Assembly (NCBI GenBank): GCA_905178155.1
Contig: CAJINV010000015.1
Location: 1,728,538-1,792,537, forward strand
DNA: 64,000 nt
Direction: 5' to 3'
Source of the DNA: Amoebophrya sp. A120
Taxonomy: Eukaryota; Protista; Dinoflagellata
The translations under genes were made by a program, and so were the position numbers. Shown one piece after another: positions 3,101-64,000 of the stretch. The notes beneath the pieces were generated by a model. The model saw only the letters and a program-made list of their open reading frames with translations, did not search any database and was not told where the DNA came from. The first letter of the stretch is position 1, and every line of letters begins with the position of its first letter.

Positions 3101-6004
3101 GCTGTGGGATTTGTCGTGTACACAAATCAGCTTTGTCTTGCAGTATAGGAGTGCAGGCAGATAAAAAGCCTGGAGGGGGCTGGCTGGGGGAGGTGGGCGC
3201 TCAGCATGGCAGACGTCTACCCTGTTGGTGCAGCAGCATGACAAATCGCCTGCGGAAACAAAGCGGCGAGAGCTCTGGCTTTGTTCTCTTGCAAGACAGA
3301 CCCGATATCTGTGGCCACAAATCAGCATCGCAAAATTTCAAAAGGATGCTTGTTCCGTTCGATATGGGGAGGGCGGATTTTTCCTTTTGATAAACCAAGC
3401 AGACTCACCCGTATGGTTGCGTTTTGGCGGCTGTGGAGAGAGACAACTATGAATTGCAAAAGTATCGTACTCGTATAAATGCATTGCGAATTTTCATCTC
3501 AGCATGAGAAATAAATATATTTGTGATCGTGCGGATTTACCTCGAGAAAAAGACTTCTATATATGCATGATTGCAATACGAGTGCGATGGATACTTTTGC
3601 AGTTCATACAGACCAGGTGCTCTCTTTCCAGGGATCCTGGAAGAAACTGTATGGCTTCACGGTGCAGGAGGATCCCTATCCTGTGTAAAAACGTCCCCAC
3701 CTCCCCATAGCCAAGATGGGAAATCTGCTACACAAATCAACCAGTAGTTTTGGGTGCTGCGCATGACAAATTGATTCGGCGCCGTAGCGTGATCCTGGTT
3801 AGTTGGTTCAGCAGCATCAGAGAGCTAGCGTGTCTTGCTGCTTCGCGCATTGCGTTTCCGAGTTGTTCCGAAAAACGACGACAAAATGTGTTTTTGATAA
3901 TTCTCAGGTTTCCGCATCAAAAGCAAAAGCATTGCAAGCATGCAGATCTGCATGTGAAGACAGCTTTATTTCGGCACTTCTCCACCCCCTGGTGACCTAC
4001 CTCCCCTGCCGCGTGACAGCCTCCATCTGTGGGCGGTTGCACAGCGGAAGGCAAACAAGTGCAAGGACCCGCAAGTCAGGGGCAAGTCAGGGGTGTCTGT
4101 TTAGCATGACAATTCTGGTGGGCTGGGGCCGTTTCTACTTTGGATCACCTGACGGGCCAATCAATCAAGGACGTGTGCTATTGTGGCGTGCAACAAGAAG
4201 CAAACGGCCCGCGTTGGGACAACGGCCTGAGTGAGCTGCTGGGAAATCCGGCAGGCGATGACTGGGACGGCGTCCCCGTCTTCATCCGGAAGACCGGGGA
4301 GACCATCTATGTCCGCCGGGCTCTTTATGCAAGCGTCAGGTTTGAAATCGACAAGGTGGAAATGATTTGTCATGCATAAAATGCAAGGCATGAAGTGCCT
4401 GTCTTGCCGGGTTGGCAAGCGAGGTCGACTGTCAGTCTGTTTAGGGTTTGAACTAGAGCTGGTAATAAAGTAGCATGACAAAAGAAGTCGTCTGTGCCCA
4501 AAGCCAAACAGCATGACAAATTGGATTGTTCCGGTGCTCGGAAAATTTGCCATGCGCCGCTTGGAAATTGGGCTTCCAACTGGTATCGATTTTATGAAGT
4601 TATTTTTTCAACTTTGACGATTCCAATCCTGACGCTTCCATACTCTTTCCTGCGTTGTTGGCGAGCAGGGTTTGCCGGGAGAATTATGCAAGAAAAAAAG
4701 AAGTGTATAAACATTGGAAAGCCGTATTATGCATAAGCACGTTGTAGCAGCCAGTAGCAGCTACACAATTTTCACCTGTCATGCTAGCCACTTATGGAGT
4801 TCTATTTCATAAAAGTGTTTATTTTCACTGAATTATATGCTAGCTGCGCATGACAGGCTTTGGCTTTGTTTCTTTGTCGTGCACCAGAGCAGGTCCTTTC
4901 TCATGCAGTCAGTCGAAGACACCTACACTAAAAACACAATTTTTCTCTTGGAAGATAACGACCGGTCAACATTAAAAAACAGTGGCACCTACAAGCGCTC
5001 GGCGATGCTGGGTCAACCCTGCTGCTTCGGAATCAGCGCGTGTTGCCTCGGCGGCACCGGAATTTTGCGGAGGGTGCGCAATTGGCGATTACAATTTCGG
5101 TCCTGACCGCACGAGACCCTTTCGGCAAGCAGCCGCTGACATTCTTGCTCGAGCCGCACCCTTGGACGATCGCGATTACCATATTGCAAGAAAAAAGTGT
5201 TACAGTTACACACATAGTCTATGCAGGCCAAGCGAGACAGACAAGCTCTGTCATGCCGGATATGCATAGGAGCCTCATTTCGTAGGCTTTTTCCCGTAGG
5301 ATTTCTGCATCTACAAGTTTTCTCTCTCATGCAGGGACATTTGTGTTGCTGAATTGCCTACAAATCTGTAACTGTAACACTTTTTTTTTGGGATATACCA
5401 GTCCACCAAACTACTACGACGAGGAGGCACTGTATCCCGAATCCCTTGTCTGCAATGCCGATTGGCATGATGCGGTTATGTTAGATACGCTCGACCATAT
5501 GCAGTGCAAAAGTATCGCACTCGTGCTGTAAATGCATTCTTGACAAATGTTCATGTTTTCCTCAGCATTACAAATCAAATCAAATTTGTTGTAATGCTGA
5601 TTTACCTTATTAAGAAAAAGACTGCATAAGTGGTGCAATTAAATTACTACGAGTACGATACTTTTGCAGTGCATAGACCAACTCGACGAACAAGACTATC
5701 CTGAGTAAAAACGTCCCCACCCCAGAGTCAAGATGGGGATTTTGCAACACAAACCTAGGAGTTTTGGGAGTCACGCATGACAAGTTGCAGTCCGTAAGGT
5801 AGTGCAAGTTAGCAAGGAAAGCCGCATCACAAATCGATCTGCTTATCCTGTTTACAGCATTACAAGTTCCCAAACACGCATGAAAATGCCTGTCATGGGG
5901 TTGTGCATCACAAATGTTGCTGTCATGGCAAATCTGCATGACAACTCTGGGGTGGGGACGTTTTTACAAATGATAGAGACTGGCGAAAAATTATGGGCAG
6001 ATGA
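160..6004 (+). CDS. 5'-truncated multi-exon hypothetical membrane protein interrupted by 14 complete introners
   Basis: Removing each TAT..ATA element + 5 nt gives one continuous frame (VASDRNSVSTGPRSRKISS...DCLFVLAITATVIFLNLMYGVILGVIV...QDWRKIMGR*), TGA at 6002-6004. The hydrophobic hairpin loosely resembles the last TM segments of SulP/SLC26 transporters (weak). Confidence 0.7.
207..486. mobile_element. Introner family A (TIR TATCCTGNGTAAAAACGTMCCCAC)
   Basis: DR cgaaa/cgaaa. Confidence 0.9.
1024..1348. mobile_element. Introner family B (TATGG..GTCAGGATCGAAATCGACAAA)
   Basis: DR acacc/acact. Confidence 0.85.
1575..1827. mobile_element. Introner family C (TATCAAATGCAAAAATGTCTGGGTCTGGAA)
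   Basis: DR gaaaa/gaaaa. Confidence 0.92.
1872..2016. mobile_element. Introner family D (TAT....TGCAAAAGTATCGTACTCGTA)
   Basis: DR gtttt/gtttt. Confidence 0.92.
2240..2569. mobile_element. Introner family E (TATCAAAAGGAAAAATCCCCC..CCCCATA)
   Basis: DR atatg/atatg. Confidence 0.88.
2682..3008. mobile_element. Introner family F (TATGGCGTTCTCAA..GTTACATTCTC), degenerate
   Basis: DR tggcg/tgggg. Confidence 0.8.
3054..3392. mobile_element. Introner family E
   Basis: DR tacca/aacca. Confidence 0.88.
3448..3608. mobile_element. Introner family D
   Basis: Clear TIRs; DR degenerate acaac/cagac; frame restored by element + 5. Confidence 0.82.
3677..4146. mobile_element. Introner family A with nested 149-bp insertion
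   Basis: Ends GGATC; DR degenerate atccc/acctg. Confidence 0.78.
4326..4642. mobile_element. Introner family B
   Basis: DR ctctt/ctctt. Confidence 0.9.
4685..4957. mobile_element. Introner family G-like, degenerate
   Basis: TATGCAAGAAAAAA...TTTTCTCTTGGAAGATA; DR agaat/acgac; frame restored. Confidence 0.65.
5182..5395. mobile_element. Introner family G (TAT.GCAAGAAAAAAGTGTTACAGTTACA)
   Basis: DR tacca/tacca. Confidence 0.9.
5498..5675. mobile_element. Introner family D
   Basis: DR gacca/gacca. Confidence 0.9.
5697..5975. mobile_element. Introner family A
   Basis: DR aagac/gagac. Confidence 0.9.
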
Positions 6005-7645: not shown

Positions 7646-10600
7646 ATGACGACCATCCAAGAGAAGTATGAGCGGCCTTTGATGTCGTGCATGACGCAGA
7701 CTCTGCCGGAGCTGAAGGAGGCTGAAAAGACGTGCAAGGTGCCGAAGACCGATGTGGCAAACATTAAGGCCCTGATTGAGCACGACAACCACCACAACAG
7801 GCGCAAGATTGAGAGCCTGATCGGAAGAGGTAGACTATGATTCTAATTGAGCAAAACCAAAAGCAAAAGCATCGCAGTACTCGTAGTATGAATTGCATTA
7901 CAAATAATTGGCTCAGCAGATGAAATTTGTAATGCGGAGTTACTTACCGTAAGATTAAGAGCGAGATTTCGATTTGTGATGCCTAACACGCTTCTACCTA
8001 AAAATCATAAAAACAGAAACCTGCTTCCGTCCGTACTTCAACACCACGCTCGACGAGCAGCGCGAGCATGCGCTCCGCCGTTTGCAGGCCTTCTGTAAGG
8101 ACAACATTATCAAATGCAAATATGTCTGGGTCTGGAAGATTGCAACTTGTGATGCTGTCTCTGCATGCTAAAAAAAATCTGTATTGCATGACCAGCAAGA
8201 GGGGTCCTGTCCAGTTTGTGCTACATGGAGAGGGTATTTCTAATGCGGGATAGGCATCAGAAAGCCCGCTAAAAATATGTGCTGCCAGGTTATGCATTAC
8301 AGACGTGGAGGTCATATTACGTCATGTAAAATCTGCATGACAAGTCTGGCACTCTTCCAGACCCAGACATTTTTGCACTTGATAAACATCATCCGAGTAC
8401 AGGACTTTGAGGAAAACCCCATGAACATCTTCATGGCCCACGAGACCTTTGCGCAGGTCGACGGTTCTTTTGCGACGAAGATGACGGTGCAGTTCAACCT
8501 GTGGGGCGGCACCGTGTACCGGTTAGGATCGGAAGAGCAGCGGCAGATGTTCGCCAACAAAACCAACAGCTCGGAAGTGGTTGGCTGCTTCGGACTGTCT
8601 GAACTCGGCTACGGAAACAACGCAGTGGAGATGGAAACCATATGCATTGCAAAAGTATAAATCGTACTAATACAGCAAATTGCATGACAAATTTTCCCTG
8701 CATGAAAAATGGAGTTCTTTGTCATGCTGCTTTATCACCTAAGAATAGAAAGGACAAGGAAATTTGTCATGCCTATCCGGGGGCGCAACGCCAACGAGTT
8801 GTATACGAGTGCGATATAATTACTTTTGCACTCGATAGACCACCGCGACCTACGATCACTCGGACGACACGTTCGTGATTCATTCGCCCTCGGTTCTCTC
8901 GCAGAAGTACTGGATCACCAACGGCGCCTGCCACGCCCACTACTGCGTCGTCTTTGCGCAGTTGATCATTGACGGCAAGCGCCAGGGCGTGCACGGATTC
9001 ATCACGCAGATCCGGGATTTGCAGACGCTGAAGCCTATGCCAGGTTGCAGGGTGGAGGATATGGGCCAGAAGGTCGGGCTGAACGGAATCGACAACGCCA
9101 AAATTTTGTATAGAGTTTTACATTTACTACTTTGGAGTTTGAAAGAGGCTGTTTCTGAGGAAGATCATGTTGCTTCTTTTCGTTTTCCTTTGTCATGCAC
9201 AAACGCGCATCACGACCGGGTTCTGTAATGTTAAAAATGCACGAAAACCCCTTTAGAGTATTGAACAACCCATCTTCACAGGTTCGAGAACGTGAAGGTC
9301 CCCCGCACGCACATGCTTTCCTCCTACGCCTGCGTCGAAAAGGGCGGGGAATACAAGTGGAAGATCGGCAAGCTGCCCGGTCTCCGCGATCGGTTTCTCC
9401 GGTTGGCGGACCAACTGCTGTCCGGCCGCTTGTGCATCTCGTCCATGATGCTGGGTGCGACGAAGGTGGTGTTAACCATTTCCAACCGCTACATGCTGAC
9501 CCGACACGGCGTCGGCCCGAGCGGAAAGTCCGATACCCCGATTTTGGACTATCAGCTGTGCCAGCACGAGGTGTTCCCATTAGTCGCGCGGATGTACGTA
9601 TCCCAAGAAGAGAAAACTGTGTCACTGTAAACTTGATGCACGACGAGAGATGGAGATCGCAAGACAGAAGTTATGTTTCTCATGCTACACACCCCGCAAG
9701 ACCACAGTGCATTTGTAGGCGTCTTTTATTGCCTTAGGAAGCACGCATGGAAAATCCAAATTTTCCTTGTCATGTAGAACGAACTTGTGATGCAAAACTT
9801 GCAAAATCCTTTACAGTGAAGCACTTTTTTCGTACGATAGTACGCGACCCAATTTTACCACAACTACGTGAAGCGGCGATACGCGGAGAGGACAAAGTTG
9901 GGCATGAACCCGAACACAGACCCAGCGGAGCTATCCAAGGTCCACATGGAGCTGGTAATCCTCTGCTCGTCGGTCATATGCAATACAAATTTCCTGTACA
10001 TGCACAAGATGCATTACAAATGTCACGAACTTGGAGCATGCCACTTGTCATGCTGAATGGAATTGAAAGAAAGTTTTGTCATGCAGAAACCGCATTTGTA
10101 CATGTACAGGAAATTTACTGTGGATAGGTCAAGCCCATCGCGGCGTGGTTGTGCGATAAGTCCGTAATCACCTGTATCCTGGGTAAAAACGTACCCACAC
10201 CAGAGTTGTAATGCAGATTTGCAAAGACAGGAAGACTTGTAATGCGCATCACCATGAGAGCCATTTCCAATCGTGTTTTGGAATTTGTGATGCTGTAAAC
10301 AGGATTAGAAGGTCGATTTGTGATGCGGCTTTGCTTGCTAACTTGCACTACCTTACGGACTGAAACTTGTCATGCGTGACTCCTAAAACTCCTAGGCTTG
10401 TGTTGCAAAGTCCCCATCTTGACTCTGGTGTGGGGACGTTTTTAATCAGGATCACCTGCCGCGAGCGGGTCGGCGGTGTGGGCTTCTTGGACGCGAACGG
10501 ATTTGGCGGCATGTTCGCGCACGCTGGTAATCTATTGAGTGCTTCACGACCATCTTCTACACGATTATAATTCAGTGATCTTGACGCAGCTGGTGATTTT

Positions 10601-13009
10601 GTTCCCATCGTTTATTTTGTGATACAGCATGCTTACACATGATAGTGATAGTGATACACATTAAGATCATCAATGCCCATGATCGCTACACCCTGAACAA
10701 CTAAACCGGAATAAAATGAATAAAAGGTATCACGGCCGAGGGTGATGCGCGCGTCCTGTGCGCGAAGGTAACCAAAGAATTAATGGAGATTCTGCAGAAG
10801 GGCACCTACACTAATTCCCTGAAGCCCATCGTTTCTACCGCGGAATACAACGTCCCCTGGAAGAACGCCGTGCAGATCGTGGCGGGCGAAGATGAAACCA
10901 AGATTGTGGCCTTCTGCCAGGAATTGGAAAAGCTGTTCGCGAAGAGGGTCCAGAACGCGTATCACACAGAAACAAGCAGGCAGGTCATATTTATTTGTAA
11001 TGCAAAAATAAATACCCAGAAAAATCTCTCATGGGCGGCCCCATAGCATGCTGTTTTTTAGGATACGCAATACAGATTTTTTGTGTATTTATTTTTGCAT
11101 CACAAATGTGGCCTGCCGGCTTTTTTCTGTGTGATAACGTGGCTGATATGTTCAAGAACAAGTTGACCGAATTCATGATGAAGGGAGACAAGGCGTTCAG
11201 GTATAGGTTGGTAATGCAACTGGAGTGAAGATTTTTCATAATTTAAATTTTTCCGACAATTACGATACGCCCTGTGGTCTTTGTTTGTCATGCGTGACTT
11301 GTCAAACAAAATCGAAAATCCCAAAAACAGGTACAAGATCTACGACGCGAATCTGAAGGAATTTTCCGATGAGATCCAATATGAACTGCAAAAGTATCGT
11401 ACTAGTACAAATCGCAATACAAGTTGGCTCAGCATTACAAATTGAATTTGTAATGCGGATTTACCTAACCAACTAGATTTGTAATGCATAACTGCGATTA
11501 CTACGAGTGCGATACTTTTGCACAGGATATCCAACTCGTCGCCGCAACTTATGGCCAGTGGGAGTCGCTCCGCGCGTTCAACAAGGTGATCTGCTCCGCG
11601 GGCACAGATCCCGATCTTTTGCACAACACGCAGACGTATCAAATGCAAAAATGTCTGGGTCTGGAAGACTGCGAGACTTGTCATGCTTGTCTGGGATGAC
11701 CAAAAAGTCTGTGATGCGTGTCCAAGAAGAGACCCTTTTGCCTGTCATGCAAAAACGCAGGCTGTCATGCGAAAAACACAACACAAAGAAGCGCAGATAT
11801 TTCTTATGCTTGGCTGTGCATTACAGAGCATTCCCTAACCCTATTCGCAACGCAGCATCACAAGTTTCCAGACCCAGACGCTTTTGCATTTGATAAGACG
11901 CAGGTAGCCACCCTCTCCCCCACCGCGGTGAACATGTTGGGCCGGTTGGCGATCCTGTACGCGATATCCTGAGTAAAAATGTACCTACACCAGAGTAGTT
12001 GTAATGCAGATTTGCAAAGACAGGAAGACTTGTAATGCGCATCCCCATGAGAGCCATTTCCAATCGTGTTTTGGAATTTGTGATGCTGTGAACAGGATGA
12101 GCAGATGAATCTGTGATGCGGCTGCACTTGCTAACCTGCACTGCAATGCATAGCGCAACTTGTCACGCGTGACTCACAAAACTCCTAGGTTTGTGTTGCA
12201 AAATCCCCATCCTGACTCTGGTGTGGGTACGTTTTTCCTCAGGATACGCGACGGACATCTTGATGGAGGATTCCATGTATGCGGTCGAGTTGAAGATTCT
12301 GAACCCGGAGACCGTATCAAGAAGAAAAATCCCCCCTTACCATATCAAAACGAAAATCTGTGATGCAGATTTGTGGTCACAAATCAGCTTTGTCATGCTA
12401 GAAGGGAAAAGATGGATGCGGACTGTAGTGCTGCGTGGCGCTGGAAAGCCTTGCATCTTCAGCATGACAGGACGCAGCTGGAAGTGGGAAACAGCATGAC
12501 AAATTGCCTGTGCCAAACGAGGCCACGACTGCGGCTCTTAGCCTTCTAGAATTACAAGTCGACGACTTCTTGTGTAAGTACTCAAATATTACAGCATCAC
12601 AAATTTCGTTGTCGATATGGGGAGCGAGGGGGATTTTTCCTTTTGATAGACCGAGCTCCCGTTTCTCCGCCCCCTGAAGGCGCAGCTGTGCAAGTGCCTG
12701 CGACCCGAAATCGTCTCGGTCATCAACTTATGAACTGCAAAAGTGACGTACTAGTATGAATCGCATGACAAATTTCCTTAGCATGAGAACTGAAATTTGC
12801 AATGCGGGTTTAACGTGAAAAAAAAATTTGCAATGCATGAATGCGATTACTAAGTACGAGTGCGATACTTTTGCAATGCATACAACGGGTTTGGAATCCA
12901 CGACGACGTCATTTGGCGCCCCATCGGCAAGGACTGGAAGACGTTTAACAAGGGGGATAACTTCGGCGAAGTGGTGGATACGGGACGGTATTTGACAAAC
13001 CAGTCGTAA
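7646..13009 (+). CDS. ACOX: Acyl-CoA oxidase (peroxisomal beta-oxidation type), ~705 aa; 11 introners and 4 GT-AG introns (7830-8016, 9108-9281, 10527-10726, 11201-11330)
   Basis: Reconstructed motifs GCFGLSELGYGNN, ETTATYD..FVIHSP..KYWI, KVGLNGIDN..FENVKVPR, CRERVGGVGF, TAEGD; spliced CDS 2118 nt, divisible by 3. Confidence 0.93.
8108..8384. mobile_element. Introner family C
   Basis: DR aacat/aacat. Confidence 0.93.
8641..8837. mobile_element. Introner with D-type TIR
   Basis: DR aacca/gacca; restores ETTATYD. Confidence 0.9.
9599..9839. mobile_element. Introner family G
   Basis: DR gtacg/gtacg. Confidence 0.85.
9977..10126. mobile_element. Introner family H (TAT..A.TA.AAATTTCCTGTACATG)
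   Basis: DR ggtca/ggtca. Confidence 0.9.
10175..10453. mobile_element. Introner family A, opposite orientation to 5697-5975
   Basis: Ends ATC; DR acctg/acctg; restores TCRERVGG. Confidence 0.92.
10960..11136. mobile_element. Introner family I (TATCACACAGAAA..AGC.GGCAGG; long TIR)
   Basis: DR acgcg/acgtg. Confidence 0.9.
11380..11529. mobile_element. Introner family D, reverse orientation
   Basis: DR tccaa/tccaa. Confidence 0.92.
11637..11895. mobile_element. Introner family C
   Basis: DR agacg/agacg. Confidence 0.92.
11965..12246. mobile_element. Introner family A
   Basis: DR cgcga/cgcga. Confidence 0.92.
12315..12648. mobile_element. Introner family E
   Basis: DR gaccg/gaccg. Confidence 0.9.
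12729..12882. mobile_element. Introner family D
   Basis: DR caact/caacg. Confidence 0.9.
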
Positions 13010-24669: not shown

Positions 24670-26118
24670 TGCAGATCAATGTCTTGGGGTCTGGGAACTA
24701 CTAGCAGATATCATATTTGCCATGCTGGTGTGTGATGAAGATCAAATTTACAATTGGTGTACTGTACTACTTGATGTTCTGACTGACAAGATGGACTTCC
24801 CCATAAATTTGCCGTAATTTTCACATGACTACAGACCCTGCAATATCACAAGAGCAGACTGCTGTGTGATGGAGTGTGTCTGTGTGCATCCTTGATTTGC
24901 CACGAAGCTGCAGGACTGAAAAGCTACCCAGATTGTCCTTGACATATTTCAACTGCATACCACGACGTTCAAACTGTTGCTGGTGATGCTGTTCCCCCTG
25001 TGCGACCACGTGGACAAGACGGTGCCGCAATAACTGAAGGCATGTCACGAGTAACACTCTCCGAGAAGACCGTAGTAGCGGTGATTTACGCCACAGAGGC
25101 AGAGATGCGTCACATCGTAGATCTCATGAACAACGCTAATGCACGGCACGACCCGGAAGTCGAAGTAGCAAGAGCACTGCTACGCTTTGATGATGTCGAT
25201 GTGGTAGAGCCTCTTCCTTGATTGATGACGAAGACCCCGACGCAGGTGAAGGAAGAAGTTGATTGAATTTACGTGTTTCGTCGAGAGCAAAAAAGAAAAA
25301 ACGGGTCGAAGGGGAACGAATGAAGGGAAAGGGGAGGCCGAAAGCCGTGAGCGACGTGCCGCTCCCGTGTAGGGAAAGAAAATGTGGAAGAGCATGAATG
25401 ATCTTTAGAGACATATCAAATACTTGTGCGCCAAGTAATGTAAGTATAGTATCAGCGACATTCATCAATGTCTAAGGATCCTCAGCAAACTACAAGCAAC
25501 TAGCAGATATATCTATGCCATTGGCATTCATTCTGTTTGGGAATAATCAAGCGGCAATCCGTCTTCTGGCCGGCACGATACACACTCACATCGCATCCAC
25601 AAGTGTGCACTGCATGCTCTAATATGCTATCTTTTTCTGAGTCTTTATTTCGTGTTCTGGATCATCCATGTTCGAAGTATTCTAGCTCTATTTTTAGAGC
25701 TGCAACAGAAGAGCATGAAGGGAAAGTTTCCTTGTAAGCGAAAATCGAATTCGCATTCGGTACGAGCTTTTTTCGTGTCAGTGATAGAAGACGATGCGGC
25801 CCCACTGAATGTAAAAAGAGTCAGTAAGTTCGTCGTTGAGAGTGTGAGCAAGAAAAAAAGGAATCCCCGCCCATCGACATCAAATCGCGTAGGTTATTTT
25901 GTAAAACTTCGCAGGTTCTTGTTTTTTCCTTAGTCTTCCCCGTCCGCTCTCGAATTCATTTTGATTCTACCCCAACTTGTTGATTTGGATTTCGTTATCA
26001 CCCACAAACCAGAAATCGTCTCTTTCCTACAGAAAGTCAACTCTGTCGTGGTCGAAAAGACGGAATACTTACACCGAATCCAGATAAAGGCAGGAAAAAC
26101 ACGAAGAAGTTCAACAAG

Positions 26119-29100
26119 ATGGTCTCCCGCACGCGCCGAGCAACGGCTCGCACTGTAGCGGCTGCCGTGGCTGTCGCATCGGCATCGGTGCATGCCAGTA
26201 ACCCGATGACATTGTTGAATGCCGGGGGAAAAAACGTCGCTGTTCCCGTCTCCTTCCCAACAACAAACCTCGTCGACTCCCAGTGGAACGAGTTCAAAAA
26301 GAAATTCAACAAACACTACGAGTCACCCCAAGAGGAAGAAAAGCGGAAGCAGATCTTCGTCGAGAACTTGAAACGGTTGGAAGAGTTGAACGAAAAGGAC
26401 AACAACTGGATTCCGTTCATATCCTGCGCAAAAGTATCGTACTCGTACGTAGTAATCGCAGTCATGCATATACAAATCTCCATACCGAGGTAAAACAGCA
26501 TGACAAATTTTATTTGTCATGCTGACCTCCGAATTGGTAATGCGATATCTACTAGTACGATACTTTTGCAGTGCATAGTCCAGTCATCTCACCCCCTTCG
26601 CGGACCAAACGAAGGACGAGTTCATGAAGCGGAATTCGTTGATTCTGACCAAGGCAGAGAAGAGCAAGATGCTGAAGGGGGTGCAGGTACTTATTTACAG
26701 TGGTGATTGCTGTGTAGACAGATGACCTAGGACTAGTAACTTATCAGTCTTCACGTGCAGGATGCGATACGGATCGCTTTTTATCCACACTCTGCTCAAC
26801 GTCCTCATCTACTTTGCATAAGTAGACAAATTGATGCAGAAAATTCATACTCAAAAAAGAAAAACTACACCGTTTTTCCAGATCGCCCCCGCGCTGCCCG
26901 CTCCCTTCAAACTGTCTCTCCCGGACCACTATTCCTGGTTGTATGACAATGCACAACTCCCCCTCCCCCTCATTTGTCATGGAAAATACCAAATCCAGCC
27001 CTTTCCCTGAAGCACTGCTTGCATGACAGATTCCGCAAGCTGAAACAGCACTAGAATCGTTCGCAAATTTGTCATGCAAAAGCTGCATTTATGCCAGCAC
27101 TTGTGTTGCTGTTTATGCCCTTCAAATGAGGGGGAGGGGGAGTAGTTGTGCACTCTCATAGGTTGGACCACGGTTACACTACCCCCGTGAAGAATCAAGG
27201 TCAGTGCGGGTCCTGTTGGGCTTTCGCGACGGCGGGAAACGTGGAAGGTGCCGCTTTGGTCGAGTTGAAAGAACTGTTTTCGCTTACGGGATGGCAAAAG
27301 TATCGTATTTTACGCAGTAATTGCATGAAAAATTTACCAACATGTTGACAAATTTACAACGACGCATGAAAAATTGAATTTGTGGTGCGGGTTTGGATCA
27401 GAAAGGAATTTTGTGATGCATGACTGCGATTAGGATTACTACGAAACGCGTACCATACGATACATTTTTGCAATGCATATTGGTTTCCGAGCAGCAGCTG
27501 GTCGATTGCGACAAGTCGGACAATATCAAATGCAAATATGTCTGGGTCTGGAAGATTCTAAATTTGTGATGCTGTCTACGGAGTCTAAAAAAACTTGCAT
27601 TGCATGACCAGCAAGAGGACTCCCGCTTGTGCTTCGCGGAGAGGGCATTTCTCATGCGGTAGAGGTAGCACAGAGCCCTCTAAAATAAACCTGTAATGCT
27701 TTTGCATGCATCACAGACGTCATGGGTAACGTAGAATATGCATGACAAACCAGGCAACCTTCCAGACCCAGACACATTTGCAGTTGATAGACAACGGCTG
27801 CGACGGCGGGTTGCCGGAACTCGCGGACAAGTGGCTGATCGCCAAGGACGTGGTATGCATTGCAAGAATGTCTGCGTCTGGATTTGTGATGCGAGATCTG
27901 AAGGGCAAGAAAATCTGTAGTGCATGAATACGATAAGCGATAAGCAACTTTTTTTGTCGTAAACGATGCCAGTTTGTCATGCGCCTTTTCTTGCTGATGG
28001 ATCCTCAACAAGAGGCCCGCCTCGCATAATTTCTGATGCTGTCACGCCATACATGGAGCCACTATGTAATTCAAGTATCAGCAGTACAAATTTCCGGACC
28101 CAGACACATTTGCAATGCATATGTGGGCTTGGAATACGAGAACGAGTATCCCTACCACGGTATTGTGGAGAAGTGCCACCTATCCTGTGCAAAAGTATCG
28201 TACTCGTAGTAATTGCAGTCATGCATTGCAAATCTTTTTCTTAGGGTAAATCTGCATTGCAAATTTTATTGCTCATGCTGAGGAAATTTGTAATGCATTT
28301 ATATACGAGTGCGATGCTTTTGCGGTTCATACCACCAAAACCCCAAGAAGGAACGGATCTTCGTCAACAACTTTCTCAAAATCAGTACTAATGTCCGGTT
28401 TCTTTGTTTGTCATGCTGAGACAGGTCACGTAAGTGTGAGTATTGTAAACAACGATGTGTTCAATGCCAAGCCACTTGGGAAGATGCAGCCGAAGGAGAA
28501 GAGCAAGAGAAGTGTAGGTTGTCGTGCGTCAGCTCCTACTATTAACGATGAAAAAGAAAAAATACTTTATTTCAACCTAAGCCAAACAAACTCATCTACC
28601 TCAGGTGACGTCGAGGACGAGATCGCCGCTGCGTTGGTGAAATACGGCCCGTTGTCGATCGGAATCAATGCGAATTTGATGCAGATGTACATGTATCAAA
28701 TGCAAAAATGTCTGGGTCTGGAAGGATGCGAACTTGTGATGCATACTTGGATCATACAAAAATCTCTCCTGCCTAGACAGCAAAGGGAGCTACTTCCCCT
28801 GTCGCCGAAAGAAGGCGTTTGTCATGCGGATTAAGCATTGGGAAGCCGTCTCAAAACCTGTGATGCTAGGCCTTGCATGGCACCCCTTCTGTGTCAAGCA
28901 GACACAGCATCACAAACCTCAGCAATCTTTCAGACCCAGACATTCACACTTTTGCAATGCATAGCATGGGCGGTGTCGCCGACCCGGACCCCGAAGCCTG
29001 CGACCCGGAGCAATTGAACCACGGGGTGGTGATGGTGGCTTTCGGTCAGGAGGACGCGCACCAAATCGTGAAGCACCCCCGGGTATCAAATGTAAATCTA

Positions 29101-53301: not shown

Positions 53302-56300
53302 ATGCCTCCGAAGAAGCAGCAAACTCCGGCGTCGAACAAGCGCGGCTCCGCCGCCGCAAGTTCATCGTCCACCGCGATCAACCAGCCCCCGACGAAGAAG
53401 CAGAAGCAACAGGAGGTGAATTACCGCATCGAGAAGATCGAGCGGGTATCAAATGTAAAAATGTCTGGGTCTGGAAGATTCTGACACTTGTCATGCACGT
53501 TCTGCATGAGCCATGATGTCTGTGATGCATACCCTAGCAATGCAGATTTTTTGAGGGCTTCTTGATGCGTATTCCGCATGACAAATGCCTTCTCAGCGTA
53601 GCAAAAATTGTATTTCCTTTGGTACTCATGCAATACAGATTTTTTTGGAAACCAAATGCAGCATCACAAGTTGCATTCTTCCAGACCCAGACATTTTTAC
53701 ATTTGATAGCGGGTGCTGCAGAAATCCGAGGACGAGTTGATCAAAACGATGCTGCAGGAATGCTGCTATGGATGTGTCAGAGTTGAAATCGAGAAAGTTG
53801 AAATAATTTGTCATGCATAAAATGGATGCCAGTTGGAACCTAGTTTCCAAGTGGCGCATGACAAATTTCGGTGGTCCCTAAATCCAGTTTGTCATGCTGT
53901 TTAGGCAAAGAAGAGCGATTTTCTCATGCTACTTTAGCAGCTCGAGCTGTAACCCCAACCAGGCTGACAATCGGCCTCATTTGCCTGCTCTGCAACACAC
54001 GTACCTCGGGCCATGCATTTTATGCATTACAAAGTATTTCAACTTTGACGATTTCAAACCTGACGCTTCCATAGCTGCAAGGACGCGTTTATCGGTGCGA
54101 ATCAGGACATGGAGCAAATGCTGCAGCACGTGGCTGCGGGGGGAACTGCAAGTGGTGGGAGCAGCAGTTCATCCTCCTCCAGTGCGGCTCCAGGTTCATC
54201 TCTGAACCTCCGGTCTTCCTCCATTGCTTCCCAAAAATACGGCTCGCACGGCAGGAATTTCGAGTACGAAACGCTGCAACTGATCTACAATGCGATCAAC
54301 GATTTGAAGACGAAGGCAACGATTCGGAAGGAAGACGCGGAGTCGCTCCGGTCCACTCAGAATTTGGAGAAGGACGACGTGAAACACAAACTCGAGCTCC
54401 TCGTATGGAATGCAAATATGTCTGGGTCTGGAAGAATGCACATTTGTCATGCTTGTCTGGCATGAATCTTGAATCTGTGATGCATGAGCAGGAAAAGGGC
54501 CTATTGCCTGTCACGCAAAAACGCAGTTTGTCATGCGGCAAACGCAACACTAAGCAGCGCAGACCTTTCTCATGCAAAGCTATGCATTCCAGAGCATAAT
54601 TCACTATTCCCAACCAAGCATTACAAGTTTTCAGACCCCAACATATTTGCAGTTCATACCTGGCGGTGCAGTCCAACTTGAAAAAGGAAGACTTGAAGGC
54701 CGCCCTGAAATACGAGGCGGAGAACAAGTATGGATGTGTCAGGATCGAAATCGACAAAATCGAAAAATTTGTGATGCGTAAAATGTAGAGCACTGAAGGC
54801 CTGTATTGGGGAGCAGGCATATGAGACCGATTGTAAGCCTGTTTAGGGGTATGCAATGCGCTGGCAGAGTAGCATGACAGGAGCAGTCTTCTTGCCCAAA
54901 CAGCATGACAGACTGGATTTTGGTGCTCCCGAAATTTGTCATGCGCCACTTGAAAGCTGAGGCTCCAACTGACATCGATTCTGTGCATCACAAATTTTTC
55001 GATTTTGTCAATTTCGATTCTGGCACTCCCATAACAAGGAAAAGAGGAAAAAAATGACGAACGAAGCGAAGAAAGCGGAGAAGCAGGTGGGGGTCGAAAC
55101 CGGGAAATTGCAGGAACTGAAGGATTATGCGGTGCAAAAGTATCGTATTCGTATATATGCAAGTCTTGCATTACAAATCTTTCTTTTAAGGTAAATCAGC
55201 GTTACAAATTTCATTTCTCATGCTGAGAAAATTTGTAATGCATTTATACGAATACGATACTTTTGCAGTTCATAAGGATGAAATCGAAAATTGCAGGAAG
55301 GAGTATTTGGAATTCCGCAGCATGATGACGGTCGGACCGCTATCCTGAGTAAAAACGTACCCACACCAGAGTTGTAATGCAGATTTGCAAAGACAGGAAG
55401 ACTTGTAATGCGCATCCCCATGAGAGCCATTTCCTGTCGTGTTTTGAAATTTGTGATGCTGTGAACAGGATGAGCAAATGAATCTGTGACGCGGCTGCAC
55501 TGGCTAACCTGCACTACACTGCAGAGTGCAACTTGTCATGCGTGACTCACAAAACCCCTAGGTTTGTGTTGCAAAATCCCCATCCTAGTAACTCTGGCGT
55601 GGGTACGTTTTTACTCAGGATAACCGCAGAACGCTCCGAATCCCATTCCGGCAGCAGCTTCTTCTTCTTCTTCTTCGAAAAAGGCAGGAAACAAGAAGGA
55701 GGAAGAATCAAACCCTGCGCGGAAGATGGTCCACGCCTTCTTAAAGAAGCTGAAACTCGAAGACTCGCTCATGTCCGCCGCGCCGAAGGCTCTGGAAAAG
55801 AAACCGCACGACCGGTCGAAGTTCGAATCTGCGGCGATTGAGGCGGTCAAAGTGGAATACGAGACGCAATTCCTGCCGAAAATGCAGCAAGAAAGGGATT
55901 CTCAAAACGAGAAACTCCACGGCAGCCGAGCCGCCAGCGATGACTTGCAGAGTCAGGTATGGATTTTTGATGAAATTTGAATTTGTTCTATTTCGGTTTA
56001 TAATTGTTTGAATTCGTAGTTTAGATTTCGAAGCGAATTTTCTTTTCGTTGTCCTGGTCATGCAGAAACGCATGAGAAACTAGAGCTCTCATGTAGAAGA
56101 ATCGCATGAGAAATAGCTGCCGAACATAACAAATCAGCTCTCCTCACTCAATATGATCACCGAAACTGCGATCGAGCGGGTCCAGCAGTTGACTAAAGAA
56201 GCGGACGACATGGACGATATCGCGACGGATCTGGAGCAACGAGCCAAGGATTTGAAGAAATCCTTTTCGGACTCGGAGAAAAATTTGAACTCTGCGTTGT

Positions 56301-56359
56301 TGGACGTGCAGGAAGCGGAGGAAGCGCTGACGTTTTTGCGCGAGGTGATGAACTTGTGA
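53302..56359 (+). CDS. Hypothetical coiled-coil protein, ~428 aa, basic N-terminus; 6 introners and 1 GT-AG intron (55957-56137)
   Basis: Continuous frame after removal (spliced CDS 1287 nt); E/K-rich helical sequence. Confidence 0.8.
53447..53708. mobile_element. Introner family C
   Basis: DR gcggg/gcggg. Confidence 0.92.
53767..54073. mobile_element. Introner family B
   Basis: DR gctgc/gctgc. Confidence 0.92.
54404..54658. mobile_element. Introner family C
   Basis: DR cctcg/cctgg. Confidence 0.88.
54729..55033. mobile_element. Introner family B
   Basis: DR acaag/acaag. Confidence 0.92.
55126..55274. mobile_element. Introner family D
   Basis: DR aggat/aggat. Confidence 0.92.
55341..55622. 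mobile_element. Introner family A
   Basis: DR accgc/accgc. Confidence 0.92.
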
Positions 56360-57652
56360 CGAACGAGGGATTTGCCTTTGTTTTTCGGATGTGGCCATTG
56401 CATGACAGGTAGTTTTGCCCTCTTGCATGTTCTGTTTTGATTCTCTCGAGAAGAAGTGTGATTTTCATTTTTCAGGGACAAGAAGTATGAATATTTTCAG
56501 CTTCTTGATGCGCTTTCGCTTGCCTGACAGGTATTTTTGTACAATAGCCGTCAAGTTGCAGTAGTTCTTTCTCAACCGACGTTTTTCTTTTTCCAATTGT
56601 AGTTATTCACTTTAACTTTTTCAGACTACCCACCAGAGAAAAAATTTTCCAGCACGCCTCAACCTTACAGTACACTAGAAGCCTAACCACCTCGCTATCA
56701 CTTGATCATCTTTTGCCAGTAGCCCTGGTCGTGCAACTTTATCGCCTTTCGTGTTTTATTTCACTCAGTATTATCGGGATCCCGTGGCCGTGCCCGTCAA
56801 CATCAACACTTCGTAGAGCGAAGTGATCTGTTAAGCTACCCATCCAGTTGAAAGTGAGTTAGAAAATCCATACTGCAGGTAAGGTTTTTAACTAGGTATA
56901 CCAGCCGAAATATATATGCACCTCTCTGCCCCGACAACAAGTTGGTAAATTCTCATAACTCGAAAAACATCGAAAACGCAAGCCAGCGTGATTCGCCGGC
57001 TAGAGCCAGCCTAGACGGCCTATTGCACCATTGTTCTTCGAAGTCCTCGCAGAAGAAAGTGTCTGGTGTGTTTCATGATTCAGATCAGCCCGATCCGTTG
57101 TTTATGCCATCATGCCGTTTTCTCCGATACGGTAACAAGCATCTTCACAGTCTCACTACAAAGTTTCGGCTCGCCGAGCAGGTCATGATGATTTCGATTC
57201 GGTTTCTGAACAAGTAGATCTTCGGTCCTTGTTTTTTCGAAGAGGAATCATGAGGTCGAGCAGGAGATTTATTACAATTGTGCTTGCGCGAACAAGGTGG
57301 GGGCGAGAGAATCAGGAGTTTTTTCCTTTTTTGAACATGTTGATGGGGATGACCCCCGAGAGGGTAGGGTGGTACTTAGTTATAGTTTGGTACTACTCGC
57401 AATTTTTACACGGACATGATGGTTTTCATCATGATCGATCTAGCGCATCATCATCACAACTTCGCAGTACACTTTTGCCCTGAAGACCTTGCAGAAGCAG
57501 AAAGGCATTGCTGTACGTAAAGCACAAGCGCCGGGTCTTCATCACATCACACTCTAAAAAGCCTAAGCTTCCAACTGCTAGCTAAAAGGAGGACGAAGAG
57601 TGTGGATCAAGCAAAGTATAGAATTCTCGCAACGTCAAAAAGAAACCAAAAC

Positions 57653-64000
<6,348 letters not shown>

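Follow-up and report, generated by a model that had tools for sequence, protein, structure and literature searches.

Introner elements of Amoebophrya sp. A120 are likely removed from pre-mRNA in a constant 4 + 1 register relative to their termini

The 64-kb stretch of nuclear DNA from Amoebophrya sp. A120 that was analyzed here, positions 1728538-1792537 of a contig in a 115.5-Mb assembly and referred to as the window, carries genes that are interrupted by short elements with TAT and ATA ends, and the present work deals with the exact position at which these elements are cut out of the transcripts. An element scan anchored on the TAT/ATA ends was applied to the whole window (an inverted-repeat scan without the TAT/ATA requirement was too noisy) and catalogued 54 TAT...ATA elements with terminal inverted repeats (TIRs) and lengths between 109 and 569 nucleotides (nt); the genes bearing them are all situated on the + strand. 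Direct repeats (DRs) of 5 nt flank each catalogued element (54/54). They are perfect (5/5) in 35/54 cases and mismatched in 19/54, the chance of a perfect 5/5 DR being 1/1024 per site. The original prediction for this DNA, which had been made from the sequence, counted 22 sites with mismatched DRs instead of the 19 found here, and a few degenerate elements may be missing from our catalogue. The DRs that it quoted are correct, namely CAACT at 12724 with CAACG at 12883, GTTCA/GTCCA at 26415, TCGCT/TTGGT at 27280, ACATG/GCATG at 28689, and TGCTT/GATTT, with 2/5 identity, at element 58994.

The elements belong to families with 13, 10, 8, 4, 3, 3 and 2 copies plus singletons, and for families 1, 2, 3 and 4, copies of either orientation are found in genes of the + strand. 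Their ends, for example TATCAAATGCAAAAAT, TATCCTGAGTAAAAAC and TATGCATTGCAAAAGT, represent the published inverted-repeat motif, i.e. TAT followed by about 7 variable nt and often by an A run; families 4, 6 and 7 keep the TAT and lack the A run, while elements 27285 and 59300 start with TAC instead of TAT. Two of the introns, folded with 10-11 nt of exon flank per side, form hairpins that are far more stable than shuffled sequences (-122 kcal/mol, z=-10.2, and -139.5 kcal/mol, z=-9.7). When the element plus 5 nt is excised, long reading frames reappear on the + strand and run across the sites of 1-6 elements in each gene. Collectively, these elements represent the introners of Amoebophrya sp. 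A120, i.e. non-autonomous transposon copies of small size that carry TIRs and have inserted into genes with a 5-bp target-site duplication (TSD). Among the less regular cases, element 3677-4146 (window 3672-4151) has a degenerate right end (GGATC) and a DR, ATCCC/ACCTG, that differs at positions 2, 4 and 5, and at site 1024 the DR copies differ at position 5, a synonymous difference.

The elements as such are already published. Farhat et al. 2021 (BMC Biol 19:1, PMC7789003) described the A120 repeats as TAT, seven variable bases and an A run, with DRs of 3-5 nt, and the introner elements of strains A120 and A25 form a subset of the non-canonical introns of Amoebophrya (PMC7789003). The elements of the window share with those introners the TAT inverted repeats, the DRs overlapping the borders, the predicted hairpins, the lack of GT-AG and the removal from transcripts, which was validated there by RNA sequencing (RNA-seq) (PMC7789003). 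The position of the border inside the DR, however, 'remains unknown' according to these authors, and their supplement adds nothing on this point (PMC7789003). Where the two DR copies differ, the sequence of the joined exons can reveal how many DR positions are taken from the upstream copy, and this number, from 0 to 5, is called the register in the following.

The stretch 53700-59699 was picked for a comparison with sequencing runs, because its mismatched DRs cover all five positions. Contigs from X1 and X2 (probable RNA), raw reads from the RNA run X9, and the probable DNA run X5 were compared; the label of X1 and X2 is 'RNA?', which is a guess. The introns of this stretch are given below with the joint seen in the contigs, the number of nt skipped and, where recorded, the value 'both' of the joint.

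54403-54662, + strand, family 2 intron, element 54404-54658; joint 54402>54663, skips 260, both=1, X1 and X2
57837-58120, + strand, family 3 intron, element 57838-58116; joint 57835>58120, skips 284, both=3, no letters between
58499-58739, + strand, family 6 intron in orientation +, element 58500-58735; joint 58494>58736, skips 241, both=4
58993-59227, + strand, intron, element 58994-59223; joint 58991>59227, skips 235, both=3
59299-59553, + strand, intron with TAC...ATA ends, element 59300-59549; joint 59296>59552, skips 255, both=3
53766-54077, + strand, introner of family 4 in orientation - with perfect DR (GCTGC); joint 53761>54074, skips 312
54728-55037, + strand, spliced introner of family 4 in orientation + with perfect DR (ACAAG); joint 54722>55033, skips 310
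55125-55278, + strand, spliced introner of family 1 in orientation + with perfect DR (AGGAT); joint 55119>55274, skips 154
55340-55626, + strand, spliced introner of family 3 with perfect DR (ACCGC); joint 55335>55623, skips 287
58777-58952, + strand, spliced introner with perfect DR (TGAAG); joint 58768>58945, skips 176
55953-56133, + strand, ordinary GT-AG intron, control for spliced mRNA; joint 55952>56134

Exactly the element plus 5 nt is gone at 10/10 elements of two transcripts in the X1 and X2 contigs. In record 2 of X1, 209 letters stand between the pieces ending at 54402 and starting at 55623, which equals the genomic span minus four skips and thus means that no letters were inserted. 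The GT-AG intron 55953-56133 is likewise absent from the X1/X2 contigs, and the contigs stop in intergenic DNA. Moreover, the X1 contig of the thiolase mRNA starts at 57466, and the loose letters in front of it, TTTGGCTCA, correspond to the 3' end of the spliced leader that is typical of dinoflagellates (window 57457-57470), hence the AG at 57466-57467 is a trans-splice acceptor. The missing GT-AG intron, the intergenic ends and the spliced-leader tail together identify the X1/X2 contigs as spliced mRNA. In the DNA run X5, none of the joints and no base differences at the DRs were found across the exon-element borders. Hence, the elements are removed from the pre-mRNA and not from the DNA, and excision at the DNA level was rejected as an explanation, since its joints are absent from X5. 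In the raw RNA run X9, which carries the same species label, only 1 read could be placed at 95% identity on the locus. The 2026 raw RNA-seq runs X9-X11 share this species label and probably derive from another Amoebophrya strain.

Differences between contigs and genome at the DRs might also be produced by strain polymorphism, by RNA editing at the DRs, or by DNA excision in part of the nuclei. The RNA status of X1 and X2 is a guess, as mentioned, and RNA editing is known in dinoflagellates, which lends these possibilities some weight. On the other hand, the DNA in X5 comes from the same organism and shows neither DR differences nor joined forms, the changed base is always the base present in the other DR copy, and the contigs lack the GT-AG intron and carry the spliced-leader tail. 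Possible editing was reported at 2-4% of the intron boundaries (Farhat et al., PMC7789003). Explanations of this kind are considered very improbable.

Five of the spliced sites have DR copies that differ, and their mRNA contigs restrict the register. At 54404, the DR reads CCTCG/CCTGG and the mRNA CCTCG, i.e. the crossover is after position 4 or 5. The opposite limit is set at 58500 with the DR GGGAG/GGGAA, where the mRNA reads GGGAA, corresponding to a crossover after position 0-4. The GGG AAG that had been predicted from the sequence at 58495 is thereby seen directly in transcript contigs, and it matches the deposited protein P0387 (LAGKSS). The crossover is at position 3 or later at 57838 (GGCGG/GGTGG) and at 58994 (TGCTT/GATTT; P0387 reads DGLTCAFNKYHMG), and at position 2 or later at 59300 (ATCAG/AGCAG; P0387 reads RKDQDEF). 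As had been anticipated, the DR with 2/5 identity at 58994 still loses the element plus 5 nt in the transcript contigs.

Further sites could be judged from proteins. For each site, the six possible junction peptides were enumerated from the window sequence and looked up in deposited proteins; the protein searches were done with single exons or with exons aligned to a template. The following introns became informative in this way.

26419-26581, + strand, family 1 intron in orientation +, element 26420-26577; P0267 peptide
27284-27483, + strand, family 1 intron in orientation - with TAC...ATA ends, element 27285-27479; P0267 peptide
28693-28967, + strand, family 2 intron, element 28694-28963; P0267 peptide
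61736-62007, + strand, family 6 intron in orientation +, element 61737-62003; P0387 peptide
12728-12886, + strand, family 1 intron in orientation - of the acyl-CoA oxidase gene, element 12729-12882; orthologues
10959-11140, + strand, intron of the acyl-CoA oxidase gene, element 10960-11136; one orthologue

The papain-like protein P0267 (448 amino acids, aa) and the thiolase P0387 (469 aa) are both deposited as 'unnamed protein product [Amoebophrya sp. A120]'. They are the products of the papain and thiolase genes of the window, whose junction peptides match them exactly. At 27285 (TCGCT/TTGGT), P0267 reads ELFSLSEQ, which permits registers 4-5 only, and the A25 orthologue P0274 reads YSLSEQ. 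It had been argued from the sequence that the papain motif S-L-S-E-Q needs positions 1-4 of the upstream copy at 27280-27484, that position 3 at 26415 must be upstream for the Phe of the prodomain, and that position 1 at 28689 must be upstream for Y-M-G-G. All three residues or motifs are present in P0267: the first in the peptide just named, the second in NNWIPFSHL at site 26420 (GTTCA/GTCCA; registers 3-5), and the third in MQMYMGG at site 28694 (ACATG/GCATG; registers 1-5), the latter being found in the A25 orthologue P0274 as well. At 61737 (AACAA/AACGA), the thiolase P0387 reads AAVEQQRS and allows registers 4-5 only. P0387 also fits the sites 58500 (registers 0-4), 58994 (3-5) and 59300 (2-5), in agreement with the sites read from the contigs.

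The acyl-CoA oxidase gene (7980-13006) contains at least 10 introners plus other introns. The exon search of protein representatives returned orthologues at 75-89% identity and not the window's own acyl-CoA oxidase, and a follow-up search with P0003 found the A25 protein P0151 (704 aa) and no full-length acyl-CoA oxidase of A120. The deposited A120 model of this enzyme is probably fragmented or missing. Since no A120 acyl-CoA oxidase protein was found, site 12729 has to be read from orthologues. Its DR, CAACT/CAACG, yields N-G-F under registers 0-4 and N-W-F under register 5. The residue in question is G in P0151 (A25), P0003, P0152 and P0153 and S in P0004, i.e. four times Gly, once Ser and never Trp, as expected from the predicted AAC GGG at 12725 with its preference for N-G-F over N-W-F. 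At site 10960 (ACGCG/ACGTG), QNAADMF results from registers 4-5 and QNVADMF from registers 0-3. The A25 orthologue reads KLACDMF, and this one informative orthologue would weakly favor a crossover at position 4 or later.

In total, 11 sites are informative, five by mRNA contigs, four by P0267/P0387 and two by orthologues. Their intersection allows register 4 only, and the intron accordingly corresponds to N-TAT...ATA-NNNN. In the mRNA, DR positions 1-4 are contributed by the upstream copy and position 5 by the downstream copy. The excised segment begins with the last base of the upstream DR and runs through the entire element up to and including the fourth base of the downstream DR. Cutting 1 nt ahead of TAT and 4 nt behind ATA, as originally deduced from mismatched DRs and conserved residues, is thus the sole single register that is compatible with all 11 sites. 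Every register other than 4, namely 0-3 and 5, is excluded by direct complementary DNA (cDNA), and both the lower and the upper bound are found inside family 1 in orientation - (27285, 12729) and inside family 6 in orientation + (61737, 58500). The upper bound was originally thought to rest mostly on one site, whereas two sites now define it, 58500 by cDNA and 12729 by five orthologues. Our data make it likely, in our opinion with good confidence, that the A120 introners are removed from the pre-mRNA with a constant 4 + 1 geometry that is fixed relative to the element termini.

Several points weigh against this reading. The two sites just named are the only ones that set the upper bound, and the lower bound of 4 comes from direct cDNA at a single site (54404), while the other three lower bounds of 4 depend on deposited gene models or on an orthologue. 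Deposited coding sequences follow the exon borders chosen by annotators, and a mismatch-tolerant aligner could misplace such a border. Logan contigs drop rare variants and X9 was unmapped, so that minority registers are possible. All register sites were tested within one 64-kb window as compared to about 30,000 elements genome-wide. Finally, in the description and drawings of Farhat et al., the position of the splice sites varies relative to the hairpin (PMC7789003), which could be due to ambiguous alignments or to genuine variation in other families. A rival reading is that there is no fixed register, i.e. that the cut varies by site or by molecule and that the agreement of the 11 sites reflects chance, selection or annotation habit. 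The splice sites as drawn by Farhat et al., the one-sided bounds at most informative sites and the minor isoforms that contigs hide would be in line with such variation. However, independent and uniform registers from 0 to 5 would meet all 11 constraints with a probability of about 6e-4, and the exclusion by cDNA as well as the two bounds found inside single families are difficult to reconcile with it. A variable register is therefore regarded as improbable.

The constant 4 + 1 register can also be described by the features that it does not follow. It is not set by the identity of the DR, as had been proposed and as is evident from the 2/5 DR at 58994, nor is it set by terminal dinucleotides, because the introns start with any base plus T and end with four arbitrary bases. 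The ends of introns skipped in the mRNA read, for example, GT..TG and GT..GA instead of GT-AG, and the introners in the 4 + 1 register lack the GT/GC...AG ends of U2-type introns. The register is independent of an intact TAT, since 27285 and 59300 start with TAC, and it is the same across several unrelated element families. Element 55341-55622 aligns over its full length with the reverse complement of 57838-58116, the identity being about 90%. As both of these copies in opposite orientation are spliced, the register is independent of orientation as well.

Whether the cut sites are measured from the physical end of the hairpin can be examined where flanking bases happen to pair. At 53767, the flanks extend the helix by at least 2 bp in the predicted fold (DR 53762-53766 / 54074-54078), and the excised length is still the element plus 5 nt. 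Similarly, target-site bases could add 1 bp to the stem at 54404 (54403/54659) and at 55126 (55125/55275), again with unchanged excised length. Such flank pairs are not depleted among the insertions (0.30 at the first offset compared to about 0.375 expected). The outermost pair of the minimum free energy structure was tried as the 'stem base' of a ruler and rejected as unusable, because the values were scattered by chance flank pairs. The original idea of a ruler starting at the base of the TIR stem is therefore partly supported and can be refined, in that the offset is fixed, though not with respect to the physical helix end, since flank pairing leaves the excised length unchanged. This constancy despite extra flank pairs points to the element terminus, i.e. 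the UAU/AUA closing pairs, as the anchor. Measuring of a distance and recognition of the terminal sequence would look the same in sequence data.

Compared to the account of Farhat et al., the border is now resolved in the window to 4 + 1, independent of family, orientation and DR identity. No published statement on a fixed register was found in the searchable literature, and the later papers that were consulted leave the border undefined. The fixed register, its independence of orientation and family and the anchoring at the terminus are new as far as the searchable literature shows.

With respect to the mechanism, the 5' cut would fall 1 nt ahead of the first U that is paired in the hairpin and the 3' cut 4 nt behind the last paired A. 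The signal would be a symmetric terminal hairpin closed by UAU/AUA and read in RNA polarity rather than a strand-specific 5' splice site, branch site or 3' splice site. Two machineries might be candidates for such a reaction, a modified spliceosome lacking U1 or a separate endonuclease plus a ligase. We tentatively put forward a structure-anchored, orientation-blind removal of tens of thousands of transposon-derived introns from protein-coding mRNAs that ignores the splice-site sequence, uses fixed offsets (-1 / +4) from the hairpin, is carried out by an endonuclease and ligase or by a radically re-tooled U1-less spliceosome, and is convergent with the nonconventional introns of euglenids; as a whole, this proposal is rather doubtful at present.

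A modified U1-less spliceosome would accept any base at +1, and the 3' end would be brought near by the hairpin, with step two taking place 4 nt past the stem. This is an alternative with regard to the machinery and does not conflict with the fixed register. The intron positions +2 and +3 (U, A) match the GUA start of ordinary introns here, which begin in the same genes with GTATGG, GTACTT and GTACTA, whereas the introners begin with N-TAT. Moreover, an almost complete set of spliceosomal proteins was found together with U2, U4, U6 and, in A120, U5, and no U1 was found (Farhat et al., PMC7789003). These arguments are opposed by the 3' ends of the introns, which have neither AG nor another conserved base, and by the lack of a G bias at +1, with DR position 5 being G in about 17/54 elements according to a hand count. 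As opposite orientations are both spliced, a branch site or a pyrimidine tract, if any, would be needed on both strands, while the CATGACAA-type motif of family 3 is present on one strand only. For the same reason, this motif was rejected as branch site, since family 3 has it on a single strand and yet both orientations are spliced. A spliceosomal removal of this type is possible and deserves serious consideration, without being probable.

Alternatively, the introners could be removed independently of the spliceosome by a hairpin-recognizing endonuclease that cuts at -1/+4 from the UAU/AUA closing pairs, followed by joining of the exons through an RNA ligase. This possibility is supported by the symmetric nature of the removal, which is blind to orientation and flanks and shows a fixed staggered geometry, and by the euglenid introns with a comparable layout that are excised as circles rather than lariats (PMC11282704). 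It would be analogous to tRNA or HAC1-type splicing and to the route suspected in euglenids. No candidate enzyme was identified in this analysis. Introns of the bulge-helix-bulge type provide a functional analogy, in that staggered cuts are defined by structure, consensus borders are lacking and a ligase rejoins the exons. Nevertheless, a bulge-helix-bulge, in which exon and intron bases pair into a 4-bp helix between two 3-nt bulges, is impossible here, because the 5' exon end is identical to the intron 3' end: the four exon bases before the 5' cut repeat the four intron bases before the 3' cut. This structure was rejected, since the relevant flanks are direct repeats and not complements, and the flank pairing frequencies are at or below chance. 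The A120 offsets (-1 / +4 from the inner stem) also do not match the bulge-helix-bulge geometry. On balance, cleavage and ligation outside the spliceosome seem unlikely, though conceivable.

The closest likeness among known introns is found in the nonconventional introns of euglenids (Milanowski et al.; Guminska et al.), which likewise lack canonical borders, show TSD-like repeats at the junction and have TIR-like ends whose pairing draws the two ends of the intron together (PMC11282704). Both kinds of introns place the stem at a fixed asymmetric distance with a 3' tail that is longer than the 5' tail: the stem occupies +4..+6 / -8..-6 in Euglena (tails of 3 and 5 nt; PMC11282704) and +2..+4 / -7..-5 in A120 (1 and 4 nt). 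The lineages and the element sequences, in contrast, are unrelated. Circular excision products are known in Euglena (PMC11282704), where the nonconventional introns leave as full-length circular RNA once the conventional ones have been removed.

Introners of Micromonas, Aureococcus, Polarella and other taxa (Huff et al. 2016; Roy et al. 2023; Gozashti et al. 2022, 2025) are likewise copies of DNA transposons with TIRs and TSDs that turn into introns when they insert, and the element is removed together with one TSD so that the frame is restored. They differ from the A120 elements in having canonical splicing motifs, according to the discussion of Farhat et al. (PMC7789003). The A120 elements, by comparison, show no conserved dinucleotides at their splice sites, and splicing takes place in either orientation. 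In the model of Huff et al., the canonical sites reportedly come partly from the element and partly from the TSD, which would make the elements orientation-dependent. Another parallel is given by the internal eliminated sequences of ciliates such as Paramecium, which are derived from transposons, are flanked by a duplicated target site and are removed precisely, leaving one copy and a restored coding sequence. They are excised from DNA by a domesticated transposase, in contrast to the A120 elements, which stay in the DNA, as seen in run X5, and are removed from the RNA.

Of the introns supported by RNA-seq in Amoebophrya A120 and A25, more than 60% have no GT-AG ends, and their recognition has been a question since 2021. 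A single asymmetric register replaces the notion of variable splice sites near a hairpin and provides a testable rule. It predicts the exact mRNA at each of roughly 30,000 elements, which should improve annotation. The machinery is constrained to one that reads a symmetric hairpin in RNA polarity and places its cuts 1 and 4 nt outside of it, and the comparison with Euglena becomes quantitative, with tails of 1 and 4 nt in A120 and of 3 and 5 nt in Euglena.

Inside the elements, a single internal motif is strongly enriched, GCATGACA / TGTCATGC, with 38 and 32 copies in the 13.3 kb of elements compared to 4 and 10 copies in the 50.7 kb outside; GCATCACA and GCATTACA are variants of it. In most cases, two inverted copies are present, one at about 40 nt from either end of the element; examples of elements with the motif are 53447-53708 and 55341-55622. 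Family 3 elements contain 3-5 tandem copies on one strand only. This subterminal motif may be a transposase-binding repeat and has little resemblance to a splicing signal tied to one strand.

Ordinary GT-AG introns starting with GTA share genes with the introners at 26687-26881, 28385-28604 and 55953-56133, of which intron 28385-28604 seems non-canonical until an ambiguous 'gt' is shifted. Finally, the thiolase transcript jumps from 59585 (GT) to about 61690, and the approximately 2.1 kb in between (59586-61691) hold repeated segments that resemble introner ends and exons.

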